DNA of 63,017 nt, the filler included, from Octopus bimaculoides (Eukaryota): NCBI RefSeq assembly GCF_001194135.2. It is 5 parts of 4 records of this genome, joined end to end, with 100 filler letters (N's around TTAATTAATTAA, not from the genome) between each part and the next. Parts side by side here need not be neighbours in the genome. Positions count along the whole stretch, not along the records: positions 1 to 13,845 come from NC_068982.1; 4 more parts are not named here. One strand, written 5' to 3'. Within the stretch, counting starts at the first letter, position 1; each line of letters starts with the position of its first letter. Position numbers and translations under genes: made by a program. The notes under the pieces are model-generated. The model had not been told where the DNA came from. It did no database searches and saw only the letters and a program-made list of their open reading frames with translations. Shown one piece after another: positions 4,075 through 5,269 of the stretch.

Positions 4075-5269
4075 TGTAGAGAATGACCGTGCGAACCAAA
4101 GGAGAATGGTGACGAATGGAACAGGCTCCTTTTAAACGCGTTGCACGGTCGACACTCAACAAACTGGTGACCCCGACGTGATTCTGTTCACACAGCTTCA
4201 CTTAAATGGTGACTAAGTGCCAGCTATAGGACCAACCGTTCTTTCAGTTTTTTCACTACAATTATTTCCTGTTTTGTCTGTCTTCGACAAACCGACTGGT
4301 GCGACGCTATGTAGTGAAACCACCTTTCTCCGTTATTTATTTACAAATGCGAACGTAGCAGGTAACAACTCTTTCCCGCCTTGGACCCTGCTGTGTCATC
4401 ACCTGACTGACTTTTGTTTGCGCGGCAATTGTCTCCAGTACTGTTCGCACCAGGATGCAAACCGACCAATCGTGGCCATCTAATAAGGTCATGTGAGAGA
4501 GTATTTTTCTGATCTTTCTGGAGCCTCTCCGTACCTATAAATAGCCTGCTTTATACACGCCACTTTGTCGCGGCTTCAGATCTTCTAAGATCTGGTCGTT
4601 GACCACATAACACCAACCAGCCAGTTTCCAGCGACTACATCAACACCATCGTTCAACTGTTTACTACAAGCTTCCCCGACGTCACTACGTACACAAGCTA
4701 CCAACAGCAACCAAACAGCGCCCGCACAGGTTCAACCAATACTGTTGTGAAATATCTTCACCTAGGTTAACAGAACTCAACCTGCGAAAGACCATCTGTA
4801 TCAAGTAGCCCGGCCTGGCATAGAAGCCTCAACTGCACATGTGACTTAGCTCTGCCTCAACGCCTCAAACTCTTATATACAGACTTTCAAATCTACTGTG
4901 TACCTTAACTGAGAACTGGTATTTCCTTATCCGTGTTACTGACTCTTTTCTATGCTCTGTATCTCTTGCATTCACATACATATATTTGTATACACACTCT
5001 TTGTTTACATGACGGCCTGTCTTACATTGTGTTTTATTATGTCGCATTCACACTCACACACAGACATACAGTTTAATGCTCTAATAAACCTTACTGTTAT
5101 ACATCTTTACCGGTTGACTCCCTATCTTTTCCTTGCTGGCAAATTTCCTAGTTCTCTTATGTTATAGTATTATAACATATCATATATTTTGTGTCGACTG
5201 TGCGACGCGTTAAAAGGAGCCTGTTTCCATTCGTCACCATTTCTCCTTTGGTTCGCACAGTCGTCTACA
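4075..5269 (+). mobile_element. Non-autonomous element with ~80-bp TIRs (TGTAGA...TCTACA), 4-bp TSD, internal tRNA-Trp PBS and LTR-like core
   Basis: 4075-4155 is the imperfect reverse complement of 5191-5269; AATT on both flanks (4071-4074, 5270-5273); TGGTGACCCCGACGTGATT at 4165-4183; TATAAATA near 4536; AATAAA near 5083; no ORF of note. Confidence 0.8.
4165..4183 (+). promoter_or_regulatory. Primer-binding-site-like sequence complementary to the 3' end of tRNA-Trp(CCA)
   Basis: TGGTGACCCCGACGTGATT is the reverse complement of AATCACGTCGGGGTCACCA, the 3' end of metazoan tRNA-Trp including CCA (tRNA sequence from memory). Confidence 0.85.

Follow-up and report, generated by a model that had tools for sequence, protein, structure and literature searches.

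A discrete, non-coding insertion of 1195 bp occupies positions 4075-5269 of the 63,017-nucleotide stretch of Octopus bimaculoides DNA analysed here ("the window"), and it combines the inverted termini of a DNA transposon with a hallmark of retrotransposons that carry long terminal repeats (LTRs). The element is a foreign insertion with inverted termini and TG/CA ends, is flanked by AATT, harbours an exact primer-binding site (PBS) for tRNA-Trp and has no coding capacity. The analysis confirms that this observation is clearly not a product of chance, and the description of the element as a hybrid, put forward in a first-pass annotation of the sequence, is right as anatomy: long inverted termini and an integrase-type insertion signature coexist with an intact tRNA-Trp primer site in its canonical place. 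With more doubt than confidence, we favour a reading in which this is a non-autonomous, Ginger2-like element that was moved as DNA by an integrase-type transposase and has its recent origin in a CsRn1-type Ty3/gypsy retrotransposon primed by tRNA-Trp.

The element is delimited by two terminal inverted repeats (TIRs), which comprise 81 nt on the left (4075-4155, plus strand) and 79 nt on the right (5191-5269, minus strand). The left repeat starts with TGTAGAG and follows the pattern TGTNR, the right repeat ends with GTCTACA, and each of them by itself forms a hairpin. Aligned in inverted orientation, the repeats share 73 matches with 4 mismatches and 6 gap columns (10 of 83 columns differ), and self-BLAST places the pair at E ~1e-19 to 1e-22 (5e-19 and 1e-22 in two runs). 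The imperfect inverted termini of about 80 bp and the TG..CA ends that had been noticed at the outset are therefore genuine, the latter being TGTAG at 4075 and CTACA at 5265-5269. Both termini are near-palindromic, and stem segments of about 20 nt are common to them in direct orientation too; the inverted alignment of the terminal units nevertheless scores 57 versus 5 for the direct one. Because the bases outside the internal stems (TGTAGA, GACAC) are also inverted between the two units, we regard the structure as a true TIR rather than as direct repeats in which a loop was flipped. Of the four substitutions that separate the arms, three are CpG transitions, and the single-base gaps sit in runs of A; the arms may hence have been near-identical when the element inserted.

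Several trivial origins of such a structure were rejected. An assembly artefact would have produced a perfect palindrome, whereas the arms observed here are imperfect. Direct LTRs with a flipped hairpin loop are ruled out, since the stem asymmetries as well as the outside bases are inverted. Two independent hairpin-type MITEs (miniature inverted-repeat transposable elements) of about 85 bp each are ruled out likewise, as the individual units lack matching flanks (AATT/AACT for one, ATTT/AATT for the other).

The base composition sets the element apart from its CpG-depleted, AT-rich surroundings. It contains 49 CpG dinucleotides, with an observed/expected ratio of ~0.9-1.1 over 4001-4800, and has a GC content of 44% versus 31-37% in the flanks; at 4075 the GC content steps from ~27% to ~45%. 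No CpG is found in 3201-4000 nor in 5401-5600, and both CpG and GC content shift sharply at the repeat ends. The normal CpG and GC content next to CpG-poor flanks indicates that the element is much younger than the DNA around it. On a larger scale, window positions 1-4000 form a strong CpG desert (10 CpGs in these first 4 kb, observed/expected ~0.1), inside which the element forms an island of normal CpG; from ~8600 to 13845, the observed/expected ratio is mostly 0.5-1.1 (range ~0.3-1.8).

The putative target-site duplication AATT occupies 4071-4074 on the left and 5270-5273 on the right, as the first-pass annotation had it, and a 4-bp match at these fixed flank positions has a chance of ~0.007-0.008 given the flank composition. 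Formally the direct repeat measures 7 bp (AATTTGT), as the element begins with TGT and the host sequence continues with TGT. Since the motif is palindromic, its assignment as a duplication relies on a paralogous, uninterrupted copy of the target (GTATTAATTTGTACC...), which lies ~148 bp upstream at 3874-3930 (plus strand) and serves as an approximate empty site. This copy matches at 77% over 57 nt, and BLAST aligns 3890-3930 with 4038-4078 at 85%. It carries one AATT followed by TGT, and similarity to it ends where the left repeat begins and picks up again beyond the right one; 10 of 500 shuffles reach the same score. Because of the symmetry of the repeats and the paralogous uninterrupted site, a true insertion with a 4-bp duplication is favoured. 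In this single copy, a model with a TA duplication aligns to the empty site about as well as the 4-bp model. The empty-site alignment thus permits a Tc1/mariner-type TA duplication, but we consider it less likely, as it would leave 6 further bp of perfect inverted repeat outside the element and would imply untypical termini. The target itself is part of a locally repeated unit at 3570-4078, in which TTGCTTYAGA..GTAT recurs at 3574, 3905 and 4053 and TTAATTTGT at 3821, 3914 and 4062; these motifs are spaced 93-331 bp apart, and the unit is the source of the paralogous empty site.

The primer-binding site lies at 4165-4183 (plus strand) and is complementary to the 3' end of tRNA-Trp, including CCA, at 19 of 19 nt. 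TGGTGACCCCGACGTGAT, which a published table gives as the 18-nt site for tRNA-Trp priming in avian retroviruses, is found exactly at 4165-4182, and the following T extends the match to 19 nt. The site starts 9 nt past the last aligned base of the left repeat and is unique in the window even if 3 mismatches are allowed (0.01 expected), which upholds the earlier claim of a 19-nt match at this very position. Eukaryotic tRNA genes do not encode CCA. As the match includes the complement of CCA, the source of the sequence is the primer site of a retroelement or a copied mature tRNA, and not a tRNA gene. ARAGORN detects no tRNA, and local alignment to a tRNA-Trp sequence yields nothing significant beyond the 19 nt. 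A tRNA gene or a tRNA-derived short interspersed nuclear element (SINE) is ruled out by the negative ARAGORN result and by the end of the similarity after 19 nt that include CCA.

The anatomy of the left unit links the primer site to the terminal repeat. The heptamer CTCAACA (4155-4161, plus strand) pairs with the terminal TGTAGAG (4075-4081), to which it is complementary at 6 of 7 positions, and thereby closes the left hairpin. It also matches YNYAACA, the consensus of LTR 3' ends in the Metaviridae (Ty3/gypsy; PMC3601003). The LTR-end-like CA is separated from the primer site by the 3-nt spacer AAC (4162-4164, plus strand), and the left 87 bp together with the primer site resemble a PBS preceded by a miniature LTR or a U5 "IR stem". 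Since the primer site stands 3 nt past this heptamer, with its hairpin-closing role and its fit to the gypsy consensus, the terminal repeat itself looks LTR/U5-derived, rather than like a transposon end with a cassette picked up next to it. The right unit has no counterpart of the closing heptamer, and its inner flank is unrelated. No reverse-complement primer site precedes the right repeat, and a simple inverted duplication of the U5-PBS junction is ruled out, as the primer site is oriented like the core.

Both terminal units are predicted to fold stably. The left hairpin (DNA fold of 4075-4164) reaches -15.6 kcal/mol with z=-3.1, and the right one z=-4.3 as DNA and z=-5.1 as RNA. One hairpin base pair differs between the units in a compensatory manner (C:G versus T:A). 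This is weak evidence of selection on the structure, because both changes are CpG transitions, and two decayed CpGs have a ~50% chance of being compensatory.

The core between the primer site and the right repeat (4184-5190, plus strand) is non-coding, with CpG-rich left two thirds and an AT/CA-rich right third. Its subterminal part contains AATGGTGAC at 4205-4213 (plus strand), an exact copy of a motif in the repeat loops (4105-4113, plus strand; 5233-5241, minus strand), which with one mismatch is also present at the start of the primer site (4163-4171), where it overlaps the first 7 nt of that site; the shorter TGGTGAC has 4 of its 5 window sites inside the element. The LTR-type signals listed in the first-pass annotation, CCAAT, TATAAATA and AATAAA, are all present in the core, yet only the exact TATAAATA rises above chance, and this motif was chosen post hoc. 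It represents a possible promoter at 4536-4543 (plus strand; P ~0.009) and is followed by a palindrome with an 8-bp stem at 4577-4594 (fold of 4560-4620, z=-2.8). The possible poly(A) signal AATAAA at 5083-5088 (plus strand), ~550 nt from the TATA motif, occurs at chance level (P=0.21), as do CCAAT at 4466 and 4736 (P=0.33) and TATAAA (P=0.22). A marginal, degenerate echo of an "LTR end + spacer + PBS + leader" arrangement (ACTACA AGC TT CCCCGACGTCAC...) is found at 4663-4699 (plus strand); its local alignment score is 26 versus 18.6 +/- 2.6 for shuffles (maximum 29), and the direct match amounts to 17/22.

Several features of an LTR retrotransposon are missing from the element. On the plus strand the core has no purine run of at least 8 nt and no 12-nt window with at least 10 purines, and therefore no polypurine tract. 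On the strand of the primer site, purine runs occur only inside the terminal repeats, and the sequence immediately upstream of the right repeat (5191) is ATATCATATATTTT. Direct repeats in the element do not exceed 22 nt. Its reading frames, concatenated over all six frames, find no homologue among 5.8 billion proteins (5435 candidates, none of which scored), the element carries no Pfam domain, and protein and Pfam searches reveal neither reverse transcriptase nor gag in it. Beyond the primer site, nothing speaks for the self-replicating, tRNA-primed retroelement with inverted ends that the annotation had proposed as one option, since a polypurine tract and direct repeats are both lacking. Its other option, a MITE that captured a PBS-LTR cassette, does not agree with the layout of the element, in which the TATA and AATAAA motifs come downstream of the primer site and no LTR stands upstream of it.

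Two further interpretations of the core were discarded. A hammerhead or another structured RNA is ruled out, as no Rfam family, the hammerhead included, matches within 4075-5269 at E<=1. A solo LTR nested in a MITE is discounted, as the TG...CA candidates with 4-bp duplications (4275-5070 and 4840-5058) occur at about the number expected by chance; the core holds no nested TIR element and no significant nested insertion.

Among the known families, Ginger2 provides the closest structural parallel. Ginger1 targets CCGG/CCGT, while Ginger2 elements have TGTNR ends, repeats of 50-180 bp and AT-rich 4-bp duplications (PMC2836005). Consequently, the earlier proposal of a "Ginger-like" element is too broad: Ginger1 does not fit the AATT found here, and Ginger2 is the only Ginger type that does fit. 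The element resembles Ginger2/TDD and the derived MITEs (Ginger2_NA of Bombyx and Rhodnius) in its TGTNR...CA termini and in its inverted repeats, which at ~80 bp fall within the range of 50-180 bp. It further resembles them in its putative 4-bp duplication, which in Ginger2 is AT-rich and often palindromic, and in belonging to short non-coding derivatives, which range from 0.5-0.65 kb up to kilobases. Ginger2_NA MITEs have WRTH or TATA duplications and repeats starting with TGTTA, and AATT fits the WRTH of the Bombyx Ginger2 MITE. Unlike this element, however, no Ginger is known to carry a tRNA primer site or, within its repeat, a motif of the LTR-end type, and the repeat found here is unrelated to the published TGTTACGGTA... 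repeat, with the target TAATTT instead of RTATAY.

The primer site leads to another group. Within Ty3/gypsy, the CsRn1 clade, which has been recorded in flatworms and mosquitoes, has a tRNA-Trp primer site and a 4-bp duplication as its stated hallmark. CsRn1, PwRn1 and AgCR share with the element the tRNA-Trp primer site, the 4-bp duplication, the TG...CA ends and integrase-mediated insertion, and the left unit with spacer and primer site resembles the junction between their LTR 3' end and PBS. In contrast, members of the clade carry direct LTRs of ~380-470 bp, a polypurine tract and gag-pol, while the repeats of this element are inverted, and it lacks a polypurine tract and is non-coding. The CHCC motif of the CsRn1 Gag and the pol domains (PR-RT-RH-IN) have no equivalent in it, and at most it would be a non-autonomous derivative. 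TRIM/SMART elements are likewise small and non-coding, and in them too short TG...CA terminal repeats are combined with a primer site that directly follows the left one; their defining features, direct repeats and a polypurine tract, are both missing here.

Inverted terminal repeats are also an option for some retroelements, including DIRS and Penelope-like elements, but neither of these uses a tRNA primer site. DIRS elements employ a tyrosine recombinase, make no target-site duplication and possess an internal complementary region, whereas the element has a duplication, no internal copy of its termini and no open reading frame (ORF). Penelope-like elements, which have pseudo-LTRs (inverted in some cases), duplications of variable length and a GIY-YIG/RT protein, insert by target-primed reverse transcription and contain hammerhead ribozymes; the element has neither a hammerhead (Rfam, E<=1) nor an ORF. 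Finally, the self-primed strong-stop DNA of retroviruses can copy itself by virtue of a hairpin, and the predicted product resembles the left end of the element. Such DNA is known as a dead-end product in vitro, and it leaves the missing polypurine tract unexplained.

What moved the element last can be judged from its ends. The termini and the duplication suggest that two CA-3' ends, in inverted arrangement, were joined to a 4-bp staggered cut, which would correspond to integrase/DDE chemistry. Canonical reverse transcription regenerates identical direct LTRs. Inverted ends therefore call for either DNA-level mobilisation or a one-off aberrant cDNA, and on the first of these premises the last move would have taken place at the DNA level. 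According to the Ginger2-like reading, a transposase that belongs to the retroviral-integrase (DDE) family and is provided in trans would bind the two hairpin-forming repeats of ~80 bp, expose the CA-3' ends (TGTAG...CTACA) and join them to a 4-bp staggered cut in the AT-rich AATT target; gap repair would then give rise to the flanking 4-bp duplication. The left unit would have originated as a miniature LTR (TGTAGAG...CTCAACA) with its 3-nt spacer and primer site, and the right unit as the same 80 bp in inverted orientation. The primer site and the TATA-containing core would be inherited retroelement parts, or else a remnant of the promoter and untranslated regions of the parent, and neither would be needed for movement at the DNA level. 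The enzyme family, mobility as DNA, membership in a multi-copy family and descent from gypsy are what we infer on this basis.

The structural hallmarks of Ginger2, namely TGTNR ends, repeats within 50-180 bp and an AT-rich 4-bp duplication, are compatible with this single copy. The repeated subterminal AATGGTGAC is, by analogy, the kind of feature that DNA transposons use as transposase binding sites, and may putatively act as such. The AT-rich, palindromic target agrees with the Ginger2-like reading as well. Moreover, the missing polypurine tract costs this reading nothing, and an autonomous transposon that suffered an internal deletion would be expected to retain a TATA motif near one end and AATAAA ~105 bp short of the other.

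Several observations weigh against the Ginger2-like reading. Only one copy of the element is seen: BLAST against the rest of the window returns nothing but TA/CA low-complexity matches, and the repeats, the core and the primer site are absent from ~24 kb of related cephalopod loci (a 20.7-kb Octopus bimaculoides locus, a 2.1-kb contig of GCA_013332615.1 and two Logan contigs), which were retrieved via neighbouring transposon proteins. Scans of metagenome contigs with the repeat pattern and with the repeat-end/PBS pattern gave 0 matches, as did viral contigs. The primer site is intact at 19 of 19 nt in spite of its two CpGs, while the repeats have lost ~3 of 18 CpG site-copies. This counts against the reading because a site without purpose should decay; an origin in very recent times, or a cDNA formed only once, would agree better with the intact site, and a Ginger2-like element would retain it as an unexplained young relic. 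The ends are asymmetric, with the closing heptamer, the primer site and extra motifs on the left only. The duplication is palindromic, and AATT, being its own reverse complement, could taken alone be read as an extension of the inverted repeat; in addition, the target TAATTT is not exactly the Ginger2 consensus RTATAY. Ginger elements are rare in molluscs and go unmentioned in a detailed repeat annotation of Octopus vulgaris. Furthermore, we know of no autonomous partner.

The main rival explanation, rather unlikely in our estimate and still the most serious one, holds that reverse transcription of a small tRNA-Trp-primed LTR retroelement went astray on a single occasion and that the integrase of this retroelement inserted the aberrant product. 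In this model, minus-strand strong-stop DNA represents the U5 hairpin in reverse complement; it would fold back and use its own initial 7 nt, the spacer and 18-19 nt of the primer tRNA as template. The resulting "inverted U5 - CTC(T/A)ACA - AAC - PBS" would replace plus-strand strong-stop DNA in the second jump, leading to a final cDNA of the order inverted-U5 / PBS / internal region / U3-R-U5 with U5-type CA at both ends, which the integrase would join to the target with a 4-bp duplication. A parent family is implied in which direct LTRs end in the sequence of 5191-5269, followed by AAC and TGGTGACC... This course of events accounts jointly for the inverted termini, the primer site inside the left one and the TG/CA ends with a 4-bp duplication, and it predicts the observed asymmetry, i.e., that the complement of the terminus (TGTAGAG / CTCAACA, 6/7), AAC and the primer site are confined to the left unit. 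A primer site fresh from the tRNA would be perfect, as is seen, and repeats that were identical at insertion fit post-insertion decay, three of the four substitutions being CpG transitions. The strong hairpin in each terminal unit and the CsRn1-type signature fit as well. On the other hand, it is left unexplained that the primer-site strand has no polypurine tract from the primer site to the presumed U3, and a convincing U3 start is missing, as no purines precede TGTAGTG at 4310. In the folded strand, the 3' tail GACA(C) would be unpaired, and consequently priming from the hairpin needs an extra template switch. Self-priming of strong-stop DNA driven by a hairpin is documented in vitro, where it is a dead end, and is undetected in endogenous reactions, which lowers the prior for such an event. 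To our knowledge, there is no genomic example of an insertion completed from folded-back strong-stop DNA.

The remaining explanations are less probable. A solo LTR of 1195 bp (U3-R-U5), left by LTR-LTR recombination of a Ty3/gypsy-like element and endowed with freakishly long inverted ends and a primer-site-like insert in U3, is an unlikely origin. TG...CA ends close to TGTTRNR...YNYAACA and a 4-bp duplication are indeed typical of gypsy, TATAAATA, the downstream hairpin and AATAAA stand in U3-R-U5 order, Ty3-like elements were recently active in octopus, and solo LTRs are common. Yet the inverted ends of known LTRs are short, with a 7-nt consensus and not ~80 bp, and an exact 19-nt primer site after an LTR-end motif would lie inside U3 for no reason; the ~550 nt between TATA and AATAAA are far for an R region, and CCAAT and AATAAA are at chance level. 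Slightly less probable still is another cut-and-paste superfamily with AT-rich 4-bp duplications, above all Sola1, that captured a fragment of a retroelement leader. AATT agrees with the AWWT duplication of Sola1, captured fragments are frequent in DNA transposons (e.g., GingerRoot), and a repeat annotation of Octopus vulgaris lists, besides the recently active Ty3-like elements, many unclassified TIR families. However, the published Sola1 repeats consulted begin with GGACCG or GACCA and not with TGTAG, the Sola1 transposase is not integrase-like, TGTNR/CA ends are an integrase signature, and random capture would not place a primer site 3 nt past an LTR-end motif that pairs with the terminus of the element itself.

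The least probable explanation, for which we see very little room, is a retroelement of a new type, which would replicate by tRNA-Trp-primed reverse transcription and yet retain inverted hairpin termini. It draws on the intact primer site with canonical spacing, on the ~20-nt stem segments shared in direct orientation, which could in principle support strand transfer, and on the compensatory pair that preserves the stem. Against it stand the missing polypurine tract, reverse transcriptase and gag, as well as the fact that canonical reverse transcription cannot regenerate inverted ends. Transcripts from the sole plausible promoter (4536) would lack the primer site and the left terminus, the compensatory pair consists of two CpG transitions with about an even chance of being compensatory once both CpGs had decayed, and DIRS, the known case of retroelements whose ends are inverted, neither produce a duplication nor rely on a tRNA. 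A related extension of the Ginger2-like reading deserves only slim credence: the element might be a member of a living, integrase-mobilised inverted-repeat family, newly born from a tRNA-Trp-primed Ty3/gypsy element, whose repeat is an LTR/U5 hairpin still accompanied by its primer site. In a more radical form of this idea, tRNA priming might even still be in use.

The import of the element depends on which of these explanations holds. Whether LTRs arose from transposon inverted repeats, or Ginger repeats from LTRs, is a question raised in PMC2836005 and PMC3601003. An inverted repeat with LTR motifs at both of its own ends and an intact primer site would, if the gypsy derivation is true, be direct sequence evidence of an LTR-to-TIR conversion, and a living family would amount to an intermediate between LTR retrotransposons and Ginger-type DNA transposons caught in the act. 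A single aberrant cDNA would be a rare genomic record of folded-back strong-stop DNA that was completed and integrated in the germ line, whereas a solo LTR or a chance mosaic would be an annotation curiosity only. As an apparent integrase-type TIR element that carries an LTR-end/PBS junction, it would gain in import if the structure recurs.

The remainder of the first part of the window contains several unrelated repeats and gene remnants. A decayed, frameshifted copy of a transposon-like gene spans 6286-8003; the gene is very widespread among animals and has 1390 homologues at E<=1e-10, typically ~555 amino acids long, in insects, spiders and leeches; the closest homologue (P0001) has no Pfam domain. 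Its DNA is 86% identical to contig JAAUYL010048738.1 of GCA_013332615.1, and assembly gaps interrupt the region (6861-6934 and 8004-8389). Just past the second gap, a palindrome of ~90 nt at 8502-8591, which is 82% self-complementary, adjoins a (TA)n tract. A repeat of ~238 bp is present in two opposite copies (5681-5898 and 8633-8869) with 83% identity; the former copy contains an internal 132-bp duplication (5707-5768 / 5839-5900), and the repeat looks like a SINE-like interspersed repeat. Sub-threshold Rfam matches to mir-297/mir-466 (27-46 bits versus gathering thresholds of 85-90) occur at 612-693, 8906-8977 and 9359-9424; they fall on low-complexity repeats of the TA/CA type and do not represent microRNA genes.

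A fragment of a long interspersed nuclear element (LINE) lies on the minus strand at 9839-10882. Its ORF at 10108-10587 is 63% identical to LOC106873154 of Octopus bimaculoides, which carries an Exo_endo_phos domain of the apurinic-endonuclease type (PF03372), while the ORF in the window has no Pfam match; at the DNA level, Logan contigs from SRR11869384 and SRR11869394 match it with 75% identity. The fragment is not followed by a reverse-transcriptase part. Finally, a second, unrelated inverted-repeat unit is found at 10887-11310. Some 250 bp separate its arms (10887-10974 / 11226-11310), whose complementarity is 92% over 88 nt. The left end, TA|CAGTGACG, is a Tc1/mariner-like start, and the right end is degraded; the unit is probably an old MITE that adjoins the LINE fragment.

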